A stretch of DNA of 64,000 nucleotides from Macrostomum hystrix (lineage: Eukaryota > Animalia > Platyhelminthes). Position numbers and translations under genes: made by a program. This document shows positions 20,196-63,390 of the stretch, one piece after another. Numbering within the stretch: the stretch's first letter is position 1; the number at the start of each line of letters is the position of its first letter. Under the pieces are notes generated by a model, which searched no databases, was not told the DNA's origin, and worked only from the letters and a program-made list of their open reading frames with translations. The stretch spans positions 1,736,001 to 1,800,000 of the forward strand of contig CATNEN010000003.1 in NCBI GenBank assembly GCA_950097015.1. The letters are read 5' to 3'.

Positions 20196-23100
20196 TTAAG
20201 CCTGAGCGGTTCCGGGTCCTGCGTCGGCTAGCACAGTTCTCAGGTAACGACCCAGACAGAATTCTGGCGCCTGAATTGGATCGTAAATCTGCACAAATTC
20301 ATGGCGTAATAGACTCTCAAGGCCCAGACGTTCTTTAGGATTCTTTCGCAGGCAGCAGTCGACAAAGTCGCAGAATTTTTCGCTGAACGCAAAGCTTGGC
20401 AATTTCGGCGGCTGCTGATAGACAATGTAGGAGAGAAGCTCAAATATGGCCATCTGTTTGGGCCCGTTCTGGGGCGCCTCCATGCCTGAGCAGATTTGGT
20501 AGGGGGGGGTACAAGGTTGAGACTAATCTATTTGGACGAAAAGGCGAAATTGATACTAGCAGTAGCGAGGACGATGCAACAGTTGAAATACTGAATAGAG
20601 GATCGGTTGCTAGGTAAACATTTACTATTTTTTTTGTCAAGTTTTAAATTTTTGCCTGCTTTGCTCCTTTCTTTGTGTTAGGTTAAGACAGGGATCGTAG
20701 CTTAGTCGTTAGGGCGTCGGACTCACGACTTGAAGGTCGGGGGTTCGATTCCCGACTCCACTGGAACAATTTGTGTCCTTTAGCAAGACACTTAACTCTG
20801 AATTGCTTCAGTTCACCCAGCTGTTAAAAGGGTACCAGCATCAGCTGGGATAATTGAAGGTGGGTGTGGCGTCCCCCCAGTCCATGGACTGAACAGCTGT
20901 ACGCAGCTTTCAGATGCGCTGCGCAATAGCTGCGGCTGTGCTGTCGGCTGCACATCTGGCCCAATTGGGGCAGGTGTAATCAATTAATTACACCTTAAGC
21001 AACTATTAATCAAGTATTGGGATCTAATCCTAAAGGATTAGAGTGACTTCTGACCAATAGGTCAGGAGTTCGAATTTTGATTTCAACCAGGTTTTAAAAT
21101 TTTACAAATTTTATAACATTGCAAAGTATATAATGGGACGGTCGTAAACATGGCGGTGACCGTGAAACGTAGCCCTATGACCGTTTATGTTAATGAAACC
21201 GGGGTCACCATGTAACCGTTCTGTGACCTTGATAATATGATAATGATAATTACAGGAGGGCTGCGCGCAATGGCACATCATTTGGTGACCATTCTGCCCA
21301 TTTCGCTGACTCCTGAGCACACACTCACACAGGTGTGTGCATCTGCCCTGACTTTCTCATCGTCAGGCAGTGTACACTCTCACTGTGCCTTGGAGATTGG
21401 CCCTCAAGGGCGTAAATTGTACGACAAGCCCCCAAGCCTTCTCTCCGCGGCTGCATCCAAAATAAATGTGACCGTTTTATAACCTCTATGATTCGTAGAT
21501 AGAGTAGATAGAGTAGATAGAGTAGATAGAGTAACGAAAATCGTTTGTATGCGAGGCAGCAAAGCCACTAATTCTCTTTCAATAAGATTTTTTTAATCAG
21601 TTCCTTTTTTGCCCGAACGATTGTCGAGTGGCGTGCTAGAAGAGAACTGCGATAGTTCCAGCCTACTTCCGAATTTTTATGAGAATACGAAATAAGGCGA
21701 TATATAGGGCTATCGACAAAGCGAAAGAAGGAAATAGGAAGAGAAGGTCACGGAGAAAAAATCTGCAGGAGGGTAAGAAGACACCCACAGAGTATAATAT
21801 ATATATTGCGAGAGCTGGCTATACTATGCTGAGAAGAAAATTTCAAGATGACACTGAGAGTGATTGAGATGGGACATAGCAGCTGCCCCATGGCATTGAG
21901 AGACTTCATTTCCAATGCCCCCACACACACGCGCGCGTATCATATATATTTTACCATCCACACAAGAAATGATTTGGCCCCTAAATCACACTGGAATGGT
22001 CTGATCAATTCAACCTTTCAACAAAAATAGTTTAGAGGAAGATGGACTTAAGCTGTAGTGAGACGCACGCATATTGCTTCTGGTCATGGCTGACGACAAT
22101 ACAAAAGGGTGTGGAGTAGGGATAAATTTACACTCTGTGTGATCCCAGATTAATATACGAGAAAAATGATGAACAAAATAGATGCCACTTAACACAAACT
22201 GAAATCCCACAAAATCTGCCACTTAAGGCTAATTGAAATCCCACAATATACAAATCCCACGTTACACAAATTGAGATCACACTACTCAAAATATACAGAT
22301 CCCACTCTTTACAAATTGATATCTCACTCTAAACAAGTTGAGATCCCAAATGTACAGATCCCACTCTATACAAATTGAGGTCCCACAATATACAGATCCC
22401 ACTCTATAAAAATTGAGATCCCATTCTATACAAATTGATGTTGATGATCCCATCCCATCCTAGATGAAATCCTACAATATACAGATCCCATCCTAAATGA
22501 AATCCCACAATATACAGATCCCATCCTAAATGAAATCCTACAATATACAGATCCCATCCTAAATGACATCCCACAATATACAGATCCCATCCTAAATGAA
22601 ATCCTACAATATACAGATCCCATCCTAAATGACATCCCACAATATACAGATCCCATCCTAAATGACATCCCACAATATACAGATCCCATCCTAAATGAAA
22701 TCCCACAATATACAGATCCCATCCTAAATGAAATCCTACAATATACAGATCCCATCCTAAATGACATCCCACAATATACAGATCCCATCCTAAATGAAAT
22801 CCCACAATATACAGATCCCATCCTAAATGAAATCCTACAATATACAGATCCCATCCTAAATGACATCCCACAATATACAGATCCCATCCTAAATGACATC
22901 CCACAATATACAGATCCCATCCTAAATGAAATCCCACAATATACAGATCCCATCCTAAATGAAATCCCACAATATACAGATCCCATCCTAAATGAAATCC
23001 CACAATATACAGATCCCATCCTAAATGAAATCCCACAATATACAGATCCCATCCTATTATAAATGAAATCCCACAATATACAGATCCCATCCTATTATAA

Positions 23101-45509: not shown

Positions 45510-48500
45510 ATGCCATCACCAGCTAAACTGCTTGGGCAGTTGTCTCACGATAGCAAAATGATGCCATTGTTTCAAGACAAAGTAGATGGCGAGTTCTTCT
45601 TGTTTGATGGCGACTCCTTGCTAATGGAGGCAGCTTCCACAGCTGGCTGGCAGTATGGCCAGCAGCTGCATCTATTCTACTCTGCTGAATCTATTCTGCA
45701 CTTGCTTCGCAGTCACGGAGGCAGCTGTCAAGTTGTATTCTTTCAAAACACTGGAAAGGCTGCTTGGAAGAGTGAGCCTCTGATGCGTTTGTTCAGACAT
45801 GCAATGCAGCTTCACTTGGTTGCTAATTGCACTGTGCCAGTGCACCGGAATTTTGTCAGCTCAACCTTAGACCAATCTTGGTTGTCTTTTCTAGAACGAG
45901 AGCTGCCACTGTTTCTAATCCTGAGCGATAGCATTGAGTATGATAACTTGGCTGTGCTGGAGCAAATTCATTTGGCCTTTTCCTGTCTTAGCCGCCGGGT
46001 GCCTATTGTCTACAGCAGTCACCTGATTCAGGAAGACAGGAAGCTTCATGGTTTGTTTTTACAATGGAAAAAAGCTCATGCTGATTTTTTTATCAAGCTT
46101 CAAAAAGCTACTAGCTTTATCAAGCTACTAGAAGAGACTAGTAGTAAGCAGGACTCTAATGTGGTGACAGACGCTGAAATACCAGCCGAAGCCGAGCATG
46201 TTGCTGTAATGGTTGGTGAGTGCGATATACTTGCTTTACTATTTTCCTGTCTATTCTGTACGATAGATGCATACATTATCCTATCTTTAATAAAAATGTC
46301 AACAGACACCGGCAGTGGACTCAGAGACTGGCTGGCAGTTCGTGCTGCTCTTCGACTTCTCGACTCAAAGCAAGATGGATCCGCAGAGCGAGCTAGCTGC
46401 TGGTGCCTCTACTTTGCCTGCATGTCTGTCCTGACCCTAGAGGACAGGCTGGAGCTAGTTGCTGCTACTAGAAGATGTTCTAGGGACCCGACTGGAGACT
46501 CGACTCAGCTAGGCGAAAGGCTAGAAGAAAATTGTATGGCTTCGCTGGAAAACTTTGCCGAGTTCCTATTATCCGATCTGCTAGTTTTGAACGATCTTGA
46601 AAGATTCAGCGATCCGGCATCCATCGCCGATCTCGTTGATGTGTTCGTCTATCAACGGTTCGGACTAACCTGGAGTGGCCAGCTAGCTGAAGGACATCCT
46701 CGGGCTAAAGAGATTCTGCAACGGTAATTTCATCATATTCGAGTTTAGAATACATTTAAAATTGATTTTTTTAATGTGGGTTTTGTATAACACAATTACT
46801 AATTGCTAATTACTAATTGCAGATACAATAGCTACGCAGCAGAAGTTACTGCTCAACTGCAGCGAAAAAAATCGGCAGACACTGACCAATCAGATATTCT
46901 ATCGTTATTGCCACTCTCCTTGTCTGACGAACTCTTGCCGGAACCTGTCGTTGAGAAGGGACATGCTAAAGCTAAACTTCAACACATCGATAATCAACTA
47001 GTGAACGAGTTTGCTGGTGGCCTTCTTGAGAAACTTAAAGCGTCTAACTCGATTTCGCTTACAACTGAGAGTGCAAATTCAGCTGCGCTGTTCGACGAGC
47101 GCTTTCACTGGCATTCGTTTCGCGAGCTTCAGGACGATTTGGAAGAGAAAGCTGAGCCAGAGCTATCAAAGAATCCCTGGCAAAGGAAGAAACAGCTGAC
47201 TAACATTCAGAAATTCAAGCGTTACATTCGCATGTACGGTGAATCGTTGCAAAATGAAACTTGCGAAACAGTGGTGCTATCCATCGGAGATAGTGCTTCT
47301 GCCACTGCTGAAAAGCCGATGTCTGCAAAGCAGCAGAAGCAGAACAGTCAGGACGATCCTCAGAAAAAAGGGCTGAAGCAGCAAAAAGGCAAACCAAAGC
47401 CAATTTCGAAGGCAGACGCCATTAAAGAGGAGAATTTGCGTGCCAAAGGTGAAAAGGATATGAAGAAGCTAAAAGAGCAGTGGAAAAATCTGCTTCCCGG
47501 ATTCAAGAAGCTTGACCCAACTCAAGCGATTGCTGAAGCCACACAAGTGATGGAATCTTGTACTGTTCAGGGTCGGCTTTTTGAAGAGCCGGCACTTTTT
47601 GTCATTCAGCAGCAGTATCGTGTGTGGAAGGCTAGTTGTTCCAGCAAAGAAGGCAAGTCGTTCGCTGCCCTAGCAGATTTAATTCGTACATTGCACAAGT
47701 ACACGTCGGAGCCTTTAGTGGACTTGATTAGTTCGGATTTTCGCGTTAAAATTGCTGAATATTTCGTCATGGTTGGATTCAAGGAGGCTGCTGCTGTTTC
47801 CGCTATTTCGTCTGATCGACTAAAGAGTGTGCAGGTCGAAAAGGACTGCCTCTGCCCAATGTCTTATCGCGATTTCCAGATGCAGCACATGGGCCATCTA
47901 ATGCAGCGAAATGTTCGATTTGATCCTGATCCTAGAGTAAAAGGATTCATTCCTGACACCTGGCAGAGAGAGCTGCTTGATGTAGTTGATAGGCGCGAGT
48001 CGGCCGTGATTGTTGCGCCAACGTCCTCCGGTAAAACATTCTGCTCGTACTATTGCATGAAGAAGGTACTGGAAATGAGCGATGAAGCCGTTGTCGTGTA
48101 TGTGTCACCAACCAAAGCTCTGGTCAATCAGGTTCAGGCTTCCATCTCTGCCAGATTCCATAAGCCCAATCTAACACCTGGCATGGAACTCTGTGGTGTT
48201 TTCACTAGAGACTATAGCCAGATGGCGACAAGCTGTCAAATCTTGGTGACCGTGCCGCAATGCTTGGAACTATTGCTGTTAAGTCCGAGACGTCAAGGCT
48301 GGGCTAGTCGAATCCGCTACGTGATTTTTGACGAAGTTCACTGCATTGGCACTGGTATTGGTGGTGTAGTCTGGGAGTATTTACTCTGCCTCATTCGGTG
48401 CCCTTTTCTTGCCCTGTCGGCTACCATTGCCAACAAAGACTACTTTCACGATTGGCTGCATACTGTGAGACAGTATGTTCAAGTGCAAGATGGCGTCACC

Positions 48501-51500
48501 GCTCAAGACACCCAGCGTCAACCGCAGCAGCTATCCAAGAAGCAGCAGAGGCAGAAAACAGTTGTACAGACCACTTCTGGTTCTGATGGCTACGTTGTCA
48601 ATCTTGTAACCTATTCTGAGCGTTATTCAGATATTCGGACATCGATCTATCTGCCAACTAACGAGTCGATTGCCGAGGTCAACCCGTGCTCCTTCTTGAA
48701 TGACAAACTTTTGTGGCGGAATGGATTTCCGACAAATCTTAGCCTGTCGCCTAAGGAGACACTTGCGGTCTTGTCAGCTGCATTGGAGTGCTTCCACGAC
48801 GACCAAGATGCTATTAAGGCTCTTGAGAAGTTTAATCCCAATGCTTACTTTGATACTCAGCCGATTAACAGAATGCAATTCCGCGAGCTTGAAGTTAATC
48901 TCAAATTGAAGTTGTCCGAATTACTGCGTCGAAACCCGCAGTCAAAGGCCACTGAACTATTGTCGACAATCAAATCTCAGGAACCTAACAAAACTTCAAA
49001 AATGTTCGCCTACCTTGGGGATGTTGATATTTTCGATAACTTCCCCGATCTGATTGATCGACTGCGATCTGAGGGCCGTCTGCCAGCCCTTGTTTTTATG
49101 AACGATCGTTCTGGAATTCAGAAACTAGCTGCTTCGCTTGTAGACCGCGCTAAAGCCAGAATCGCTGCGTCCATAGACAAAAGCTTGCTAGAACGCATGG
49201 AGCAGGCTAAAGAAGCCCTTGCCGCGGCGGCTAAGCGTAATCGAGACAAGGAGGATTCCGACGGCGAGGAAGAGTCGCAATCGCCACCAGAGTTGGAATC
49301 TTACCAACGCGATCGGCTGCAGTATCGCAACAAGATTCATGCGTGTGCCTACTTCACACCGCAGGCGGTGTCTGACTCCTTTCTAAACAGGGCGCTAGAA
49401 AAATTTGACGAGAACGACGAAACCAAAAGTATGCTAGAGCTTGGCGTTGGCTTTCATCATGCCGGCTGTTCGACTAGTCATCGTCGCGCTGTTGAGATGC
49501 TCTTCCGAGCCGGTCATTTGCAGGTATAAGCTTTTTGTTTCAGATAGTTTTCAAACACGCAAATATAAAGTGCACTTCCGTAATTAAATAAATACGTCGG
49601 TACGGTGTTCGAAGTTTTTCCTGTTCATAAAAAACCTTTTTATTTATATATACATTTTTTCCTAAAAAAACCTAGCTGCACTACTTTTTGGAGAGCTTTT
49701 AAGTAACTATTAATAGTTAACTTACTTCTAGTGTATTTTAGAAGTAATGTCGGCCTCGTAAATCCCTGGAATAAATTAGATCAAACTGTTTAAAAATCGA
49801 GACCGCTTTTCGGCTTGGTTTTCATTTTAATCAATAATTTAAATCAGATTAAACATCAATATCACCTTGCGCTGGTTGCTTCCTGGTTGGTTCTCCTCTT
49901 CCCAGTCCATAGAATGTAAATTCGATCAAATTAAACTATTAATGTCTCCAGTTTACTCGTTTATTTTTCGTGCCGACTTACATTTTGATTTCCGGGCCCG
50001 TTATTTAGTTATTTTTAGTAATGAAAAAGCAATCACCAGATAGGAAGCCATTTAAAGTTTTCTCTTCCTAGTATTAATGCAGTCTGTTAGTCTAGATCAG
50101 GATTGCGCACCATTGACCTAGCAATGCATAGTCCTGGCGGTACCAGACATATGCCGGAGCAGCACTGATTATCGCAGACGCATTTCGTGCCATCTTTGGC
50201 GCAGGCTGTGAAAATTTAGGAAAAATATTGCTTTGGGTTAGTTCAGCTTTCAACACCTGTTGTTATTTCCGCTAGAGCTAGCTTTTATAATTGATATCCC
50301 GCTAAAAATAGGGATGTTTCTTTGGGTGATTCCAGTTGGAATCTGCGGTGTTTCCAGAAAAAGAAACAGCCGAACGCTAGAAACATACCAATCGGTTGAT
50401 TCCATGCTTAGAATCTACCCAACTGGGCGTTTTCTCGGTGCTTCTTGGTGTCGAAATGGAATCACCCAAAGAATCCTCCAGTTCGGAAGATTCCATGCTC
50501 AGAAACCGCCGAGGAATCGCCCGTAAATAATTCTCTGGTTGTACCATGGGCCACTGGTTCGGGCGATTCTTCGGCGGTTTCCGTCCGCACAATTTATGGT
50601 TACATCGGCTGCTTCCTGGGTGGTTTCTTTAACTCTTGTGAGATAGGGGGGATTTTGGTAGATTCCACTCCTATTTTGCACAAAAAACCCGCCGAAGAAG
50701 CAGCCGAATTTTTTACAGGGATCTTACCGTCTTGACGATCCAAATCCCTGACGGCGCCACTGGCAGCTGGCTGAAACATGATCGCCAGCATTAGCATCAG
50801 GCAGCCCATAGCTAGTAGCGTACATAGCTTCATGGCTAGTAATTATAGCTTGGACCACAGTTGGTTAATCACACTTCTTTACCGCTTCGGTCGACAGATA
50901 CTGTATACAAATTTCCGAAAATTGGTGGGCAGTTTTTACTTTATATGGAAGTATTGGTGCCATGAATGTTAGAACTGTCTGAATTTAACTGAGTACAGTC
51001 TCAGTATGGTACAGCTGGCTTGGCGGTTTTCTAATTCATTGGTAATTCCGATAGCTGGGAGTTAAGAAAAACACTAGCCACTTTTTATGCTGGTAGAACT
51101 ATAGCTTATTGGAATAGAAATTCTTTAGTAGCGTCTATAGTGCTGTAAGTTGCCTCCTATTTTGCACAAGTCCGGCATTTTGCTTAACCCAGCAGTAAAC
51201 TTAAACACAAAAATGCAACAAAAATCTCTTGTTGTAGTCAATTCGAACTGCAGATCTCGTTCTAAGCTCGAACTAAGATTATTGTAATCTTTTGGTCAAG
51301 GAGAGTTTATGAGTTCGAATCTCCGTTTTTTAGAAAAAATGGTCCCTAACTGTAATTTATGTAGGAAAAATATGCTAAAATTGATTCTAAAGATTACACC
51401 TGTCTTAATCTTTAGGGGATTAGCGGCAGTGAGGTCTATCGCATTTCCCTATGGCACCAAGGTCGCTGAGTTCGAACATTAATTTGTGGGGCTAAGGCAG

Positions 51501-54260
51501 GCACCAAACCCACTCCAATTGCCATAGCAAATGCTGAACACTAAAGCAATGCAGAAACCACATTCCTAGTGGTGTTAAGATCGAACCATCGACCTTGAAG
51601 AGTCCTTATATTTCCAGTCCTCAGAAAAAAAATTTCATTTTAACGTTGCGTTTTGTCAATTTCAACATTATCGGTTGTTAATATATAATTAATATGTTGT
51701 CGCCTGTGTGCCTATGCTAACAGGTGGTGACTGCGACAGCCACTCTGGCCCTTGGCATCCACATGCCCTGCAAGACGGTTATATTCGCTGGCGATGACAA
51801 GTTTCTAGACGCGCTCAACTATCACCAGATGGCTGGTAGGTCTGGCCGGCGCGGCTTTGACAACATCGGCAACGTGGTGTTCTACGGCGTGCCATCGTCC
51901 AAGATTAGCCACCTGATTCAAGCTGACCTGCCTGAGCTGAAGGGTGGCTTTCCTCTCACCTGCGCCTTTGTTCTGCGTCTGCTACTGCTAACTGGCAATA
52001 GTACAGACTCGGAGATAGCTCACGCCAAAGCCATGACAGTGTTGGAGCACCCGTTTGCCGCTCACAAGCGTCCGGATATGCTGCAGCAGTTGCGCCTGTT
52101 CCTGCTATTCAGCGCCCAATATCTGCACCGCCTAGACCTCATTAACGAGGTTGGAAGACCATTGGTAAGAGCCTGTTAATCAGTCAATTTAATCAGTCTC
52201 AGTCAAAAATTCGCAAGGCAGAGCAGTTAATGCGATTTCACAGCGAGGCCACATTAATTTGGGGCGCAGCCGCGGAGAGAAGGCTTGGGGGCTTGTCATG
52301 TAATTTAAACCCTTCAGTGCCAGTTTCAAAGGCACAGTGAAAATGTACACTGCCTGACGACGAGAAAGTCAGGGCACACCTGTGTGTGCTCAGGAGTCAG
52401 CAAAATGGGCAGAATTGCCTCCTCTCAGGCTGCAGGTCTACAGTCTCCATCAATTATTATTGTATTGCCTAAACGAAAAGGTGACTCTGACTAGCTGTGT
52501 AAGTTTATGGGAGCAATCTATGTTAGGCGCTAATTTCAAAGTATTTTCTGTGCATTCTATAGAAACAAATTGATGAAACCTTCTAAAGTGCAAATATTTC
52601 TCTTCGGCTGCGATTTGAACTCCCGACCTCTCAGTCAGAATAAGAATTTCTAAGCTCCAAAGCTAGTTAAAATAAAACAACTCTGCTATTCCTGCTTCAA
52701 GGGTCTGGCTGGCCTAGTATGCCACATGGGCTACATGGAACCTGGCAATTTCGTGCTCACCTACCTGCTGCGCTCGTCGGCCCTCCGCTCGCTCTGTCTC
52801 CCCAGCGCCGCCCTGCCCCCGGTTCACTACGGCGTCTGCTGCGGCGGCTGCCAGACTGGAAAATCCATCGTTGGTAAACGATTCAAATGCACTCAGTGCT
52901 GGTCTGACTACAGTCTTTGCTCAGCCTGCTATGGAGGCCGGCCTAATCACAACAGAGGCCGCAGTCAGCACACCAAGGCTGATTTTGAGCTAATTGAGCC
53001 GCCATTGAAGCTGCGATTCTCTGACGAGATCCTGCGCCAATTGATTCACATCCTGTGCCACCTGTTCACTAAATTGCAACTGCCCCGGTCTCTGATTAGA
53101 AAGACACCGACTGGCTTTGTCTACAAAATGTGAGACGTGTTTGACACCTGAATTAGCACTGTGATTAAGTAGTAATATTCTCCAGATTGAGTAGTCACCA
53201 ACTAGATTGAGTAGTCACCATCTAGATTGAGTAGTCACCATCTAGATTGAGTAGTCACCATCTAGATTGAGTAGTCACCATCTTGATTGAGTAGTCACCA
53301 TCTTGATTGAGTAGTCACCATCTTGATTGAGTAGTCACCATCTAGATTGAGTAGTCACCAACTAGATTGAGTAGTCACCATCTTGATTGAGTAGTCACCA
53401 TCATCTAGATTGAGTAGTCAGCATCATCTAGATTAAGTAGTCACCAACTAGATTGAGTAGTCACCAACTAGATTGAGTAGTCACCAACTAGATTGAGTAG
53501 TCACCAACTAGATTGAGTAGTCACCAACTAGATTGAGTAGTCACCATCTAGATTGAGTAGTCACCAACTAGATTGAGTTGTGGATTTTAAACTGCCTGGT
53601 TGCATTCCTAATCCCAGGGAGACGGAGAACTCGAAGGTGCTGCTCGAACCGCTACCGCCTAGCATCGAAGCCGAGGTGTTGGCCTACAACACTAGCACTG
53701 TAGACACATACACTAATTACCTGCACTGCGTAGCCCAGTGCGGCCTGTTCAGCTTCTCAACCAAGCTGCCATTCAGCAATGCCGCTCCTCTGCAGTCGGC
53801 CAATTCAGCAGCCGGCGAGGTCTCGGCCGTGGCCCCACTGGCTCGCCTGTCCTGGGGCCCGAGTGGCCGGGCCTCCGATGTCGCCCTACGCAATGTGCTT
53901 TTGTCGCCCGACTATTCGAACAGCTATGAACAGCTGCGTCGCCTATTGCCCTTGGAGATCCTAACCGATGCCAGCCTCATCCCGCTGCTGCCTCCTGGTC
54001 GCCAGTTAAACGCCTACGTGCTCGACTTCTTCAAGCACGGCAGTCTGAATTCATTGAGAATCGATAACGGCCTGAGAGAGGGTGACATTTACCAGTTGCT
54101 GATCGACTTTTCTCTAGCCTGCCGCGCTGTGGCTACTATACTGCAGCAGCTGGCCACCGATGCCGAAGATCCCGTTCTCTGCGCCTTCCAGCACGTCAGC
54201 CGCGAGTTTGGCGAGAAATTTCACGCCGCCTTTCCTGATGCGAAACGCCTTCCGCAATAG
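45510..54260 (+). CDS. DDX60: DDX60-like Ski2-family DExD/H RNA helicase, 6 coding exons, with an inserted ZZ zinc finger
   Basis: Exons 45510-46215, 46306-46723, 46823-49523, 51724-52164, 52702-53129, 53618-54260. DDX60 hallmarks: EFFLFDGDSLL, QLHLFY, FDERFHWHS, DPRVKGFIPDTWQRELLDVVD, APTSSGKT, DEVH, ALSATI, GFHHAG, TATLALGIHMPC, QMAGRSGRRGFD, LNAYVLDFFKHGS. Confidence 0.95.
50087..50833 (-). CDS. Secreted conotoxin-like inhibitor-cystine-knot peptide 1, nested antisense in a DDX60 intron
   Basis: Exon 50833-50728 encodes the signal peptide MKLCTLLAMGCLMLMLAIMFQPAASG-AVRDLDRQD with donor G|GTAAG. Acceptor TTTTCACAG then exon 50205-50087 encodes (A)CAKDGTKCVCDNQCCSGICLVPPGLCIARSMVRNPDLD*. 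Phase-1 join is in frame. TATAAA at 50945-50940. The 3' end may use a third exon. Confidence 0.8.
52262..52462 (+). mobile_element. SINE family B copy in a DDX60 intron
   Basis: CCGCGGAGAGAAGGCTTGGGGGCTTGTC..TGCCTGACGACGAGAAAGTCAGGGCA. Confidence 0.8.
53183..53578. repeat. 20-bp minisatellite (AGATTGAGTAGTCACCAACT) filling the last DDX60 intron
   Basis: Tandem units visible directly. Confidence 0.95.
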
Positions 54261-54525: not shown

Positions 54526-56096
54526 CAGATTGGATCACCACACTCCCCGATCCCCAGATTGGATCACTACACTCCCAGATCCTCAGATGGGGTCACCACA
54601 CTCCCAGATCCCCAGATTGGATCACCACACTCCCAGATCCTCAGATTGGATCACCACACTCCCAGATCCTCAGATTGGATCACCACACTCCCAGATCCTC
54701 AGATTGGATCACCACAGTTCCAAAATCCTCAGATTGGATCACCACACTCCCAGATCCTCAGATTGGGTCACCACAGTTCTCAGATCCTCAGATTGGATCA
54801 CCACACTCCCAGATCCTCAGATTGGGTCACCACAGTTCTCAGATCCTCAGATTGGATCACCACACTCCCAGATCCTCAGATTGGGTCACCACAGTTCTCA
54901 GATCCTCAGATTGGATCACCACACTCCCAGATCCTCAGATCGGATCACCACAGTTCTCAGATCCTCAGATTGGGTCACCACACTCCTGCATCCTCAGATT
55001 GGGTCACCACACTCCCAGATCCTCAGATTGGGTCACCACACTCCTGCATCCTCAGATTGGGTCACCACACTCCTGCATCCTCAGATTGGGTCACCACACT
55101 CCTGCATCCTCAGATTGGGTCACCACACTCCTGCATCCTCAGATTGGGTCACCACACTCCTGCATCCTCAGATTGGGTCACCACACTCCTGCATCCTCAG
55201 ATTGGGTCACCACACTCCTGCATCCTCAGATTGGGTCACCACACTCCTTCATCCTCAGATTGGGTCACCACACTCCTGCATCCTCAGATTGGGTCACCAC
55301 ACTCCTGCATCCTCAGATTGGGTCACCACACTCCTGCATCCTCAGATTGGGTCACCACACTCCTGCATCCTCAGATTGGGTCACCACACTCCTGCATCCT
55401 CAGATTGGGTCACCACACTCCTGCATCCTCAGATTGGGTTACCACACTCCTGCATCCTCAGATTGGGTCACCACACTCCTGCATCCTCAGATTGGGTCAC
55501 CACACTCCTGCATCCTCAGATTGGGTCACCACACTCCTGCATCCTCAGATTGGGTCACCACACTCCTGCATCCTCAGATTGGGTCACCACACTCCTGCAT
55601 CCTCAGATTGGGTCACCACACTCCTTCATCCTCAGATTGGGTCACCACACTCCTGCATCCTCAGATTGGGTCACCACACTCCTGCATCCTCAGATTGGGT
55701 CACCACACTCCTGCATCCTCAGATTGGGTCACCACACTCCTGCATCCTCAGATTGGGTCACCACACTCCTGCATCCTCAGATTGGATCACCACACTCCTG
55801 CATCCTCAGATTGGATCACCACACTCCTGCATCCTCAGATTGGATCACCACACTCCTGCATCCTCAGATTGGGTCACCACACTCCTGCATCCTCAGATTG
55901 GGTCACCACACTCCTGCATCCTCAGATTGGATCACCACACTCCTGCATCCTCAGATTGGGTCACCACACTCCTGCATCCTCAGATTGGGTCACCACACTC
56001 CTGCATCCTCAGATTGGGTCACCACACTCCCAGATCCTCAGATTGGGTCACCACACTCCTGCATCCTCAGATTGGGTCACCACACTCCTGCATCCT
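54526..56096. repeat. 29-bp minisatellite (CAGATTGGGTCACCACACTCCTGCATCCT)
   Basis: Tandem units; source of three spurious ORFs longer than 500 aa. Confidence 0.97.
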
Positions 56097-57216: not shown

Positions 57217-58550
57217 CTTCTTGACATTCAGCGCCACCGCTTCCTGCGGCGTGTGGAAACCCGCTGGGTGCAGCTTTTGCCGGTTGCCAACCGACTTGTC
57301 GAGCAATTGCCAGTGTTGCGCGAATACTTCAAGAAACATCGCAGGTCAGATGGCCGAGAAAACTTTGAAAACGGACAAGTCCAGCGCATCTGCGAGCTAC
57401 TCGAGGAGGACAAGGAGTTTGACATTTTATTTTTGCAAGCAGTTTTGCCAATGCTTGACGCGTTTGAGAAGGAATACCAGCAAAAGAAGGTGCTTATTCA
57501 CAAGATGTACGCGACTGTTCGGCAATTTTTCCGAGAAGTGCTGAGTTTCTTCATGAAGGTGGACTCATTAGTGCCAATTCATCGCGTTTGACTAGAATGA
57601 AAATCGTCTTCGAGCACTGCCTTTCTGACCGCGACATCTTCGTTGGTGAGAAGGCTCGGGCTTTGCTGTCAGACTGTTCTGAAAGGATTCAAAAGCAGTG
57701 CATTGTCCGTGCGAGACAGTTTTACATGGAGCTTGCCGTGTACCTGCAATCGCATCTTCCTCTGGCCGATGCCACCCTAAGGCAGGCCCAGTTTCTCAAT
57801 CCTGTAACGATTTCAGAGACTTCCTCCGACTTTCCGACTAAGTTGGCCAAGACACTGAAGTTTGCTGAAGACGAGGTGACGGCAATTGACCGAGAATGGC
57901 GTGCACTGACCCTTTCTGTTGCTATCAACGAACTGTGCATCCCGTCAGACCAGGCTGAATCAAGTGCATTGGACTTTTGATTCTTGGTGGCCGAACACAA
58001 GAGCTTGTCTGGAGAGCCGAAGTTTCCGAACCTGTGGCGACTTGCTTCGGCCATTCTAACAGTTCCGCATGGTAACTCTGATGGGGAACGCGCCTTCTCG
58101 AGCCTTGTGGATCCTCTGTCTAGAAAACGCAACTCCTTGGGTTCCTTCACAGTCGACGCATGCCTGTTGATCAACGGTTTTCTGAAGGCTACGGATCTTA
58201 CTTGCGAAACGTTTGAGTTTGGCCCGAGGTACATCGCCGAGGGCTTCAATGCCAGACAAAACCTGTCTGTTCGACAGCGGCGCATGCAGAGGGAAGAAGA
58301 GCTTCGCGAGGCACGCCTGGCACAAGAAGCTGCCAGTAGTGCTAGATCGGAGAAGGAAGGAAGGCTGGCAGAGAAGATGCTGCAGCATAAGGATAAGCAG
58401 CGGCTGCTTGATGCCGAAACGGAGAAGGCAAACGCCCTGCTAGAAGAATACCAGCGAAAGATGCTCGCCCTGCAAGTGAAGCGAAAGACGCTCAGGTGCA
58501 CACAAAAATTGAAAAAGGAGGTGAACTATGAACATGTAATGTGCAGATAA
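57217..58550 (+). pseudogene. hAT-superfamily transposase remnant
   Basis: ETRW motif and dimerisation motif FPNLWRLASAILTVPHGNSDGERAFS; frameshift near 57588 and an in-frame TGA at 57978-57980 (LDF*F, probably a Trp codon). Confidence 0.85.
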
Positions 58551-59156: not shown

Positions 59157-59310
59157 CGCGCGCTGATTGGTCCGCTAGGGTGTTGGGGTAGGTAGCGTAT
59201 GAGGCGGTTGGTTTGCATGGGTCTGGTGGGGTGCGAGGGTACAATAGACCTCGTCCGACATATATAATCCATGCACCAACCCCACCTCCCTCACCGACCA
59301 ATCAGTGCGC
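59157..59310. mobile_element. Short fold-back (MITE-like) element
   Basis: GCGCGCTGATTGGTC..GGG pairs with CCC..GACCAATCAGTGCGC; inner arms GGTTGGTTTGCATGG and CCATGCACCAACC. Confidence 0.45.
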
Positions 59311-59371
59311 TGCGGCAGATCGTATCTCATTATCTTACATAGTTCTTACATTATCGAATTTAAAATTCGCT

Positions 59372-59562
59372 TCCATGGACTGGGGGGACGCCACACTCAC
59401 CTTCAATTATCCCAGCTAATGCTGGTACCCATTTAACAGCTGGGTGAACTGAAGCAATGCAGAGTAAAGTGTCCTGCTAAAGGACACAAACTATTCCAAA
59501 GGAGTCGGGAATCGAACCCCCGACCTTCAAGTACGACGCTCAAACCACAAGGCTACAACCTC
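59372..59562 (-). mobile_element. SINE family A copy
   Basis: Reverse-complement match to 20690-20890. Confidence 0.85.
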
Positions 59563-59727
59563 CTTGTTGGATTAACACAAAATATATCATTTAATTAGCT
59601 GATTCCAGATCCTCAGAGTAAAAACTTTATTTAGCATGCTAAATAGATTTGTCAGCTCGCGTTTTCTCAAGTAGCGAAGCAAACGAATTGGAGCATGAAT
59701 TTCGTCACAAAGCCATGCCGCTTATCA

Positions 59728-60264
59728 TCAGGATACCAGAGGGTCCAGGCTAACCGAATCCTGCGAGGCGCACACACTTTGAGACTCCATGCAGTAGCCG
59801 GAGCAGCATTGGGCACAGCAGACACAGTGCTGGCCAATCACTGCGCATCCTGTACACAACAGATGTTCAAGTTGGAAAGCATGTTATTACAAAGTGCATA
59901 CACATTTACACTATATCACACTTACACTTAATATCCCCTAAATATCGAGCCCACTTAACTTCACACCCAGAACAGCCGCAGCTATTGTTCAAAGACTGCG
60001 TACGGCTGTTCAGTCCGTGGACAATGAAGACTAAAGGACACAAATAGTTCCAGTGGGTTCGGGAATCGAACCCCCGACTTTCAAATCATAAGACCGAACC
60101 TAAGCCCATTAGGATACAAACCATTGCTTACTTACAAAATAAAACTCACTTGGCACAAGCGAAACAGCCAATGCAATCGAGTTAGTTGCCAACAGAACTA
60201 ACAGAAAGAAGACAACAAACTTGCAGACAAGTTGGTTGCTATGGAAACAGCAACCGACGATCAT
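59728..60264 (-). CDS. Secreted conotoxin-like inhibitor-cystine-knot peptide 2, paralog of peptide 1
   Basis: Exon 60264-60150 encodes MIVGCCFHSNQLVCKFVVFFLLVLLATNSIALAVSLVP with donor A|GTGAG. Acceptor GTGTACAG then exon 59849-59728 encodes (R)CAVIGQHCVCCAQCCSGYCMESQSVCASQDSVSLDPLVS*. Same phase and Cys spacing as peptide 1. Confidence 0.8.
59971..60122 (-). mobile_element. Degenerate SINE family A fragment in the intron of knottin gene 2
   Basis: GGGAATCGAACCCCCGAC and CTGCGTACGGCTGTTCAGTCC match family A. Confidence 0.65.
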
Positions 60265-61597
60265 GATTTTTGTACGAGGTGACAAGACAGAAAGACAAAA
60301 ATATTTGTTTTAGTCTGTTGTCAAGCTATTATGGGGTACAAAGCAAAAGGAATTGAATTTAAGACTGCTTGCAAGATTATTGTATTCTACTACTACAATT
60401 GTCTGACCAGTATTATAATCCCAGTATGACAATCAATTTTTACATTCAATGTACAGTTGCTCTATTTTACATATCGCGAAATTTAAATACTTGAAAATCG
60501 ATAACACTAATTATAAAAAAATTTGCTCAACTCAAATACGTACTCACATTTGCTTTAGGGGGTGTCTAAAGGCTAGGAGTAGTTAGAGCTATTGACATGA
60601 GCTATCTGACCATGAGTTCTTGTTTTCGAATCTCCAATACATTTATAAATATACCAACAACTGTGCCTACTATCAAGTAGCAAGACAGGAGTATTTAATA
60701 AATTTACAAACGAATTTACATAGTCACTAATCAGTTACATGCCATATATGCACTCGTATATTTAGTAATCAATGTTATAAAATGTAATTTGAATTGGTAG
60801 TAAGGCAAAATTTGTGTGAAATAAACGCACAATCATTAAGGTCACAGATGGGGCCTTATTAAGTGGAATAAGCATACTCAAATTAAATAATCGATTAAAA
60901 CTTCAAGCCTAATTGGACGGCAGAAAACAATAAGTTTCAATAAAAAAACTACAATTTTAATCAATTTGACAATGAAATTACATTGAAACACAAGATTTAG
61001 ACCTAATTAAGCATTTTCCAAAGAAAAAACAACAATTGATAATTACAAAATCAAAAAGATAAGCACTATATATTCAGAACAGCCGAAAAACTATTTGCAC
61101 AGTGAATAATTTTTCACAATTATGAACTTCACGTTGTGATATCAGTGTATGTGATATAATAATAATAAAACACTAAAAAAGCACAGCACTACTCATTAGT
61201 AGCTAGGGAATGAAATTTGTTAACAAACAATAAAAATTTTAATTGAAATTCACATCAACTACAAAAAGGTAAACAGTTGCAGAATGCCGTGGGGATAAAA
61301 TTCAGTTCAAAAGGCCCCAAAAATTTACGTAAAGTTACGAAATCTGTTTAAGATTTCAAGTTTGTAAAAAAGTTTAATAATGCACTGAACATAGAGCTGG
61401 ACGAACAATGGAATGCGACCGTAGCAACAATATTTGTTTTGAAAACAGCAGTAGTATGGGTTAGCAGAACCCTGCCGACACTGCGGAGATAGGAGGGCGG
61501 CCTAATGCATTTGAATGGGGGAGGGGTTGCCTATCCCAGAGCAGAGGACACAGCCGACACTATGGAGATAGGAGGACATCGTAATGCATGTAGATAG

Positions 61598-62652: not shown

Positions 62653-63390
62653 ATGGACATCTGCGACGGTTATAAGATTCAGGTTCAAGAGTACGAAGGC
62701 TTGAAGTACATAGCGATAAGAAAGTTCTACCGCCACGGCAGCACTGCAAGTCTGAAACCTGGCGTCCCTGGCTTCAACCTGAATGTTTGCCAATGGGAAA
62801 AGCTGAAGCAACTGAAGCGGTCGCTCGTAGTGTCTGCTCTCAAAAGCGAGTGCAAGGTGGTGAAACTAGGTTTTGATAAGTTTATCGAAGTCAGGGACGG
62901 CATCATCTGGCTCAAGCGGCTGCCTGAGGACTGCTGCGAGGAATTCATGAAGCGTAACGCCGTACCGCTGACCCCACCGCTGTGGAAGAAGCTGTGGCAC
63001 AACGCATCATGGATAGACGGCCAGCTGTCGGCTCCCTTCAAGGACATGCGGACGAAGTACGAGCTGGAGTCAGATGAGGAAGAGCAGGACACGAAGCCCG
63101 TCCTGGAGGCCGAGAGATCTGAAGGCAATGGTGGAGACGGAGACGAGATCGGCTCGCCTAGAATGCTGCAGATCGACACCGAGGCTGCCACATCCACGCC
63201 GCTTCCCCTGGCTAGCGCTGGGGATGGACGGATCCCGTCTCGGGACTCGGACTTGCGGGAGGACCCGGTGTGGTACCAGTTCCGGGCGGCTGCGGCTGCG
63301 GCGGCCAGCGGTAGCAGGAAGCGCAAACAGCCGTTTCCACTTCGTCGGCAGGAGGCAATGAAGCTTACCAGGCTGCACTTCGATGAGTGA
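62653..63390 (+). CDS. PC4-like ssDNA-binding domain protein (element-encoded), 245 aa
   Basis: IQVQEYEGLKYIAIRKFY..LKPGVPGFNLNVCQWEKL fits the PC4 pattern; a second degenerate repeat ends VPLTPPLWKKL; acidic tail; intronless. Confidence 0.75.
   Translation: MDICDGYKIQVQEYEGLKYIAIRKFYRHGSTASLKPGVPGFNLNVCQWEKLKQLKRSLVVSALKSECKVVKLGFDKFIEVRDGIIWLKRLPEDCCEEFMKRNAVPLTPPLWKKLWHNASWIDGQLSAPFKDMRTKYELESDEEEQDTKPVLEAERSEGNGGDGDEIGSPRMLQIDTEAATSTPLPLASAGDGRIPSRDSDLREDPVWYQFRAAAAAAASGSRKRKQPFPLRRQEAMKLTRLHFDE

Follow-up and report, generated by a model that had tools for sequence, protein, structure and literature searches.

The 64,000-nucleotide stretch of the Macrostomum hystrix genome analysed here (contig CATNEN010000003.1, positions 1,736,001 to 1,800,000; hereafter the window) carries on its minus strand two small genes that encode short, cysteine-rich peptides. 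Gene 2, located at 60264-59728, is the locus singled out in a first-pass annotation made from the sequence, whereas gene 1, located at 50833-50087, is its paralog and encodes what that annotation called peptide 1. Gene 2 is a real, independently transcribed two-exon gene that is spliced at 60150/59849 and has a complete open reading frame (ORF) of 78 codons. Transcript contigs give this micro-gene an extent of 60375-59529 on the minus strand, with the following parts:

60412..60417, minus strand: TATA-like box (TATAAT) read from the sequence, 42 nt before the outermost contig 5' end (60375); putative promoter element
60265..60375, minus strand: 5' untranslated region (UTR), minimum extent; contigs of runs X2-X4 reach 60363-60375
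60150..60264, minus strand: coding part of exon 1, 38 codons plus one base; from the sequence and spliced contigs
59850..60149, minus strand: phase-1 intron of 300 nt, GTGAGT...ACAG, with a pyrimidine-rich stretch before ACAG; skipped in one contig each of runs X1-X4
59728..59849, minus strand: coding part of exon 2, consisting of Arg, a 39-residue Cys-rich peptide and TGA; from the sequence and spliced contigs
59598..59727, minus strand: 3' UTR, with AATAAA at 59631-59626, 96 nt past the stop codon; from the sequence and contigs

Our reading of the sequence agrees with the first-pass annotation on the coordinates of gene 2, its hydrophobic leader exon and its phase-1 intron. The start codon (ATG, 60264-60262) has an A at position -3; upstream of it, the transcribed 5' UTR has no other ATG but does have an in-frame stop codon (TAA, 60312-60310). 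The leader encoded by exon 1 resembles a signal peptide: its hydrophobic core occupies residues 17-25 (maximum Kyte-Doolittle nine-residue mean of 3.71) and is followed by an A-x-A site and a short pro-stretch with a terminal Arg. The codon split between the exons (A from exon 1 and GA from exon 2) encodes an Arg immediately before the first Cys, which makes the intron phase 1. The Cys-rich peptide itself (59731-59847, minus strand) has eight cysteines in the arrangement C-x6-C-x-CC-x2-CC-x3-C-x6-C.

Transcription of gene 2 and its relationship to gene 1

Five sequencing runs from two studies were found, and four of them (X1-X4) were mapped onto positions 59300-60700. In each of the four runs, one contig skips exactly 300 nt, the plus-strand ends of which (CT..AC) correspond to GT..AG on the minus strand. 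The 60150/59849 junction predicted in the first-pass annotation is therefore present in intron-less contigs from four runs and both studies. These contigs are 262-548 nt long (530, 466 and 548 nt in X2, X3 and X4, respectively); those of X2-X4 have no mismatch to the window and jointly span 60375-59529. Contig depths are modest (7-27), and depth is zero in the unique intron sequence and in the flanking DNA, where only parts of repeats related to short interspersed nuclear elements (SINEs) are covered. Because exon 2 is single-copy in the assembly, as judged by protein and profile searches, we rejected the possibility that the joined form is a retrocopy present in the assembly. Given the transcribed in-frame TAA and the lack of an ATG upstream of the start codon, we consider the 78-codon ORF to be complete.

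Multi-copy, tRNA-like SINE fragments with a GGTTCGATTCCC box are located at the end of the gene 2 3' UTR (~59372-59563) and within the gene 2 intron (~59958-60098), and some gene 2 contigs enter the second of two such SINE-like repeats as they extend to 59529. Many unrelated contigs match these fragments at depths of hundreds to thousands, indicating that the element is abundant in transcripts.

The first-pass annotation reported a same-strand paralog with the same exon structure about 9.5 kb away. The two genes indeed lie on the same strand at a distance of 9,431 bp from start to start, and the phase-1 layout recurs in gene 1, whose parts were read from the sequence:

50728..50833, minus strand: exon 1, 35 codons plus one base, encoding a signal-peptide-like leader with a hydrophobic core of 2.9 on the Kyte-Doolittle scale
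50206..50727, minus strand: phase-1 intron, GTAAGA...CACAG
50087..50205, minus strand: exon 2, encoding a seven-Cys knottin peptide (the six-Cys frame plus Cys10)

In both genes, the phase-1 intron is situated one residue before Cys1. The annotation had also stated that neither exon appears in the ORF track, which holds for gene 2, neither exon of which reaches 60 amino acids as an ORF, but not for gene 1, exon 1 of which appears as a 77-amino-acid read-through ORF.

The Cys-rich exons of the two genes align without gaps over 33 residues, of which 14 are identical (pairwise BLASTP E-value of 1e-7). In a permissive tblastn search of the window, gene 1 and gene 2 recover each other with an E-value of 2e-7 and the next match has an E-value of 0.4; in a genome-wide search with the gene 2 exon, the gene 1 exon is found at an E-value of 0.045. 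The Cys spacing, the CVC cysteine, the QCCSG motif and the respective totals of seven and eight cysteines were all described correctly in the first-pass annotation. Beyond the cysteines, the peptides have Ala2, Gly5, Val9, Gln13, Ser16 and Gly17 in common, with identical codons for Ser-Gly. A six-frame scan of the window recovers this Cys frame only twice, in gene 1 and in gene 2. Judged from the Cys-codon frequency, chance would produce about 2e-4 stop-free matches to this six-Cys frame in 64 kb.

How far the paralogs have diverged depends on the part compared. The first-pass annotation held that both the leaders and the loops between cysteines differ almost completely. The leaders do (no alignment at E-values up to 100), but the loops do not: 2/6, 3/5, 2/3 and 0/6 residues are identical in loops 1 to 4, or 7/20 in total, with conservation over much of loops 2 and 3. 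The pairwise nonsynonymous and synonymous divergences (dN = 0.58 and dS = 1.44, the latter saturated) yield a ratio of about 0.4 that carries little information, and synonymous differences are found at 5 of the 14 conserved residues. Together with the loop identities, these values give no support to the proposal that the loops are hypervariable and under diversifying selection. On sequence grounds, the duplication is old; no DNA similarity between the two loci extends beyond exon 2, and the duplication can therefore be neither dated nor delimited.

Searches of the whole assembly (220,453,370 bases in 42 contigs) identified no additional family members. The CVC/CCSG pattern scan proposed in the first-pass annotation, carried out at the DNA level as CVC-x2-4-CCSG, recovers gene 1 and gene 2 and no further carriers, and genome-wide protein searches and a profile search find only the same two loci. 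The annotation's small gene family is thus real in that it includes a diverged paralog, but by protein, profile and motif scans of the assembly it comprises just two genes. A genome scan for the motif CA-x2-G-x2-C...CC...C recovers gene 1, gene 2 and two further, exon-like candidates. These two (G000:C38:34987395-34987451 and G000:C41:1552940-1552999, both on the plus strand) are stop-free matches to CA-x2-G-x2-C...CC-x3-C and may be single-knot peptide genes. Weak matches elsewhere in the genome (L003, L005, L007-L009, L042, L044, L046 and L089) were dismissed as chance, as they lack the full frame, contain stops or are antisense to a long ORF. DNA scans of the genome for the Cys frame alone were uninformative, returning thousands of matches to (CTG)n-type repeats.

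Outside the genome, a homologue search of large protein collections with exon 2 of gene 2 returned nothing; the query was a 51-amino-acid open frame, so that precursors of 78 amino acids fall within the length range, and neither gene 1 nor gene 2 is present in the collections searched. An exhaustive HMMER profile search of 1.84 billion representative proteins produced two matches. One (P0001) was discarded as a repeat artefact, and the other, UniRef100_U5EN92 (E-value of 2e-4), is the one real candidate for a relative. A full-text literature search found no paper in which knottins and Macrostomum occur together.

With respect to its neighbours, gene 1 lies antisense within an intron (49530-51723) of a DDX60-like helicase gene (45510-54260, plus strand). 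The helicase gene has very large exons, one of them of 908 codons, and encodes a DEAD domain; its best relative of solved structure is kDDX60 (E-value of 3.6e-58). Gene 2 occupies an intergenic position about 5.5 kb past the last large ORF of the helicase gene, from which it is separated by a satellite and a transposon remnant. Nothing in this context suggests that knottin function is connected with the helicase neighbourhood. The satellite (54526-56096) consists of 54 copies of a 29-bp unit with 94 per cent matches; as none of its plus-strand frames is interrupted by a stop over about 1.6 kb, it gives rise to spurious ORFs of more than 500 amino acids. The remnant (57253-58550, plus strand) derives from a hAT-family transposase and retains the C-terminal dimerization domain (E-value of 3.9e-9). 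Elsewhere in the window, an ORF at 62653-63390 (plus strand) encodes a PC4 transcriptional-coactivator domain (E-value of 1.7e-6), and a borderline Rfam tRNA match at 20691-20760 (plus strand; 29.7 bits against a gathering threshold of 29), which is not called by ARAGORN, probably represents a pseudogene or a repeat of tRNA origin.

The cystine-knot frame and the additional cysteines

When the additional cysteines in loop 2 are set aside, both paralogs conform to C-x6-C-x5-CC-x3-C-x6-C, the classic inhibitor-cystine-knot (ICK) frame, with the cysteine order C-C-CC-C-C and loop lengths compatible with a knot. In the gene 2 peptide, the canonical cysteines are residues 1, 8, 14, 15, 19 and 26, and the additional ones are Cys10 and Cys11. 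Sequence searches of the entire PDB with a two-sequence profile and with both single peptides yield weak matches that are almost exclusively knottins, among them spider, assassin-fly and sea-anemone toxins, the insect antifungal Alo-3 and a plant knottin; the sole non-knottin is an agglutinin isolectin (E-value of 3.2).

Structure prediction for the gene 1 peptide points in the same direction. From a four-sequence alignment, AlphaFold returned a predicted local distance difference test (pLDDT) score of 81.3 in all five models, with values of 86-90 over the first 30 residues. All eight Foldseek matches to this model are knottins (template modelling [TM] scores of 0.54-0.73; root-mean-square deviation [rmsd] of 1.0-2.4 Å; E-values of 1.7-10). 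In a VIA-align comparison against 48,161 chains, 39 chains reach a Z-score of at least 2 (the highest being no more than 3.3), and nearly all of these have knottin folds or the Dickkopf/colipase fold, which is related; the matches include the knottins AgRP and carboxypeptidase inhibitor. The ESM Atlas neighbours belong to spider knottin clusters (scores of 0.88-0.89), which we take as a lead only. From the modelled paralog, we infer that exon 2 of gene 2 folds as an ICK, with disulfides predicted to connect cysteines I-IV, II-V and III-VI of the frame, that is, residues 1-15, 8-19 and 14-26.

The loop-2 cysteines are not equally conserved. Cys10, the CVC cysteine, is common to the two paralogs and is retained in either transcript variant of gene 2. 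Position 11 is Cys (TGT) in the gene 2 reference and Asp (GAT) in gene 1, and in the contig from run X1 an A>T difference on the plus strand at 59817 changes codon 11 from TGT to AGT, which encodes Ser. The variant is seen in a single contig at a depth of 7.2, from a run filed under another organism label. Since this contig has Ser at position 11, the eighth cysteine is not fixed, and the conserved oddity of the two peptides is a single extra cysteine. Cys10 is probably exposed and would either be free or link two molecules through a disulfide; in the gene 2 reference allele, it could instead be joined to Cys11 by a vicinal disulfide. The first-pass annotation considered that the additional cysteines may mark a new ICK subframework. 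We consider that suggestion doubtful: the frame is canonical with the extras inside loop 2, the Cys at position 11 is replaced by Ser in one run, and an ICK with a vicinal pair has been described before (PMC4029134).

Candidate functions

We favour the reading that gene 2 is a real knottin-type gene whose product is a secreted, externally acting ligand, and assign it a probability of about 0.6. Under this reading, exon 1 would supply a cleaved signal peptide and a short pro-piece with a terminal Arg, and a cell of the gland type would secrete the peptide. Once outside, by analogy with other knottins, the peptide would serve as a rigid ligand that resists proteases and that binds to and blocks a protein target, which may be an ion channel, a receptor or an enzyme; a rigid ligand or inhibitor is the default expectation for the knottin fold. 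A role as an effector in defence or interaction against other organisms would be favoured over that of an internal hormone. We tentatively place an externally acting effector ahead of a regulator working within the animal and of a peptide of the seminal fluid. A membrane-active antimicrobial peptide of the cationic type was rejected, as the gene 2 peptide carries a net charge of about -3 and the gene 1 peptide one of about 0.

Several observations weigh against the favoured reading. The types of runs X1-X4 are not on record as RNA; that they are RNA is suggested by contigs from which a canonical intron is missing, by contig sets that resemble transcriptomes and by the absence of coverage in the flanks. 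AlphaFold's model of the gene 2 peptide, built from a two-sequence alignment, is poor (pLDDT of 57.5) and has no Foldseek or VIA-align match, so that the assignment of gene 2 to knottins relies on its gapless alignment to gene 1. Even for the gene 1 model, the fold-search E-values and Z-scores are individually insignificant, as is to be expected of so tiny a peptide, and the weight is carried by the composition of the match lists. Exon 2 of gene 2 has no relevant Pfam match, including to PF08087 and PF02950, and exon 2 of gene 1 scores 16.5 bits against PF08087 (Toxin_18; E-value of 0.0087), under the cutoff of 24.3 bits. Finally, an odd number of cysteines, as in gene 1 and in the gene 2 variant of run X1, is uncommon among stable knottins that are secreted.

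Among the alternatives, it is possible, at a distinctly low probability, that the peptides are endogenous regulators, acting either as enzyme inhibitors (for example, restraining tyrosinase-type eggshell tanning) or as hormone-like ligands similar to the agouti-related knottins. The sole significant relative outside the genome is annotated as a putative phenoloxidase inhibitor, AgRP and carboxypeptidase inhibitors appear among the fold matches, and a dN/dS ratio below 1 and the conservation of loops 2 and 3 fit a constrained function. However, the Tyr-containing loop 4 of the insect relative is not retained in either paralog, and a conserved hormone would not be expected to have one insect protein as its only homologue among 1.8 billion proteins.

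We regard it as unlikely that gene 2 encodes a reproductive peptide of the seminal fluid or prostate gland that is passed to the partner in hypodermic insemination. A small, lineage-restricted gene of secreted type without detectable homologue would suit such a role, a circumstantial match, but the sequence itself holds no hint of a link with the reproductive tract. Slightly less probable still is the idea that Cys10 is the functional centre of the peptides, offering an exposed, reactive thiol for covalent dimers or covalent target trapping, with the Cys/Ser exchange at position 11 switching between a form capped by a vicinal disulfide and a free-thiol form. If this were true, and if the peptides were delivered by the stylet in hypodermic insemination, they would constitute a venom-like component of the ejaculate.

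That the locus is transcriptional noise, namely a spliced non-coding transcript with a chance Cys-rich ORF or a decaying pseudogene, seems very improbable. In favour of noise, the protein collections that were searched do not contain the gene, contig depths do not exceed 27, and SINE fragments occupy parts of the intron and the 3' end. Against noise stand the complete ORF with a leader, a phase-compatible intron and a six-Cys frame common to the paralog; the chance expectation of ~2e-4 frame matches in the window; the synonymous differences at conserved residues and dN smaller than dS; and the confident knottin model of gene 1. The proposal that the two exons represent mere pieces of some larger, known gene, which the first-pass annotation had named as the finding that would undo its interpretation, can practically be dismissed, because the contigs hold both the upstream in-frame stop and the stop codon and end in UTR with no listed loose ends, and because no larger protein is matched except for the repeat artefact and the insect knottin polyprotein.

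Comparison with known systems

Gene 1 and gene 2 do not represent a new kind of molecule or mechanism, as knottin peptides are very widespread, and their use lies in annotation and in Macrostomum biology rather than in the definition of a new class. They document that a model genus of free-living flatworms has short spliced genes for cystine-knot peptides of secreted type and, in the case of gene 2, expresses them, and they provide researchers working on Macrostomum with two concrete, testable peptide genes.

The closest protein in the databases, UniRef100_U5EN92 from the midge Corethrella appendiculata, is a 356-amino-acid 'putative phenoloxidase inhibitor' with five conotoxin-type units that passes PF02950. 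Its units have six-Cys spacing identical to that of the flatworm peptides and share with them the motifs CA-x2-G-x2-C and CCSG-x-CL. In an hhalign comparison of the flatworm profile with the five units, the probability is 95.6 per cent over 27 gapless columns, and gene 1 is identical to unit 3 at 13 of 26 residues. In contrast to the insect polyprotein with its five units, each flatworm gene encodes a single unit with one or two extra cysteines in loop 2. Moreover, the insect Tyr-containing loop 4 (SFSYK) is not preserved, neither flatworm paralog having a Tyr in this loop and their fourth loops having none of six residues in common. The likeness may be due to convergence, as the motif is short and driven by its cysteines.

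Among solved structures, the best sequence match is Dg12a, a knottin from assassin-fly venom (PDB 6px7), which aligns without gaps over residues 1-28 with all six cysteines in register. It superimposes on the gene 1 model with a VIA-align Z-score of 2.6 and an rmsd of 1.4 Å over 28 residues. The profile E-value against the PDB is only 0.014, however, and Dg12a lacks an extra cysteine in loop 2 and comes from an unrelated organism, so that its function is not transferable.

Conotoxin superfamilies each have a conserved signal sequence. The flatworm peptides do not qualify for the O-superfamily: the match to PF08087 is under its cutoff, and the two leaders, which cannot be aligned to each other, match no toxin family.

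The additional loop-2 cysteines of gene 2 have a parallel in the kappa-hexatoxins, in which an ICK includes two additional adjacent cysteines between knot cysteines II and III that form a vicinal disulfide (PMC4029134). Like the gene 2 reference allele, kappa-hexatoxin-Hv1c (J-atracotoxin; PDB 1dl0) has eight cysteines with an adjacent pair in loop 2, but it has no significant sequence similarity to the flatworm peptides, and its structural Z-score is only 2.0. The vicinal pair of kappa-hexatoxins is also in a register different from that of gene 2. Since gene 1 and the X1 variant retain only one of the two cysteines, a vicinal bond is not the conserved feature of the flatworm pair. The natural Cys/Ser/Asp series at a single loop-2 position nonetheless offers material for studying the role of extra cysteines in knottins.

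Within flatworms, the relevant comparison is with UPF0506, a platyhelminth-restricted double-knot domain known from schistosomes and from the secretome of Schistocephalus, the second half of which reads C-x6-C-x5-CC-x3-C (PMC8400842); a 'Trematoda' family is included in the KNOTTIN database (PMC2238874). UPF0506 (PF11703) is secreted and flatworm-specific, but it is a 12-Cys double knot, whereas gene 1 and gene 2 encode a single six-Cys knot with extras, and neither gene matches the PF11703 profile even at E-values up to 10. The M. hystrix genome has a UPF0506-like ORF of its own (L006:1465-1824, minus strand, corresponding to G000:C12 around 2229128), which has 12 cysteines and scores 21.6 bits against a cutoff of 23.2 bits. 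It is preceded by an apparent phase-1 poly-T/CAG acceptor and a short tandem repeat, and a homologue search of protein collections with this double knot returned nothing. Its second unit matches gene 1 at 11 of 20 residues, including DN-x-CCSGIC, with a genome-wide E-value of only 0.9. Judged from these sequences, common descent of these peptides from a flatworm knot domain is plausible. The comparisons connect flatworm single-knot peptides to the widespread conotoxin-like or phenoloxidase-inhibitor-like frame and, possibly, to the UPF0506 double knots.

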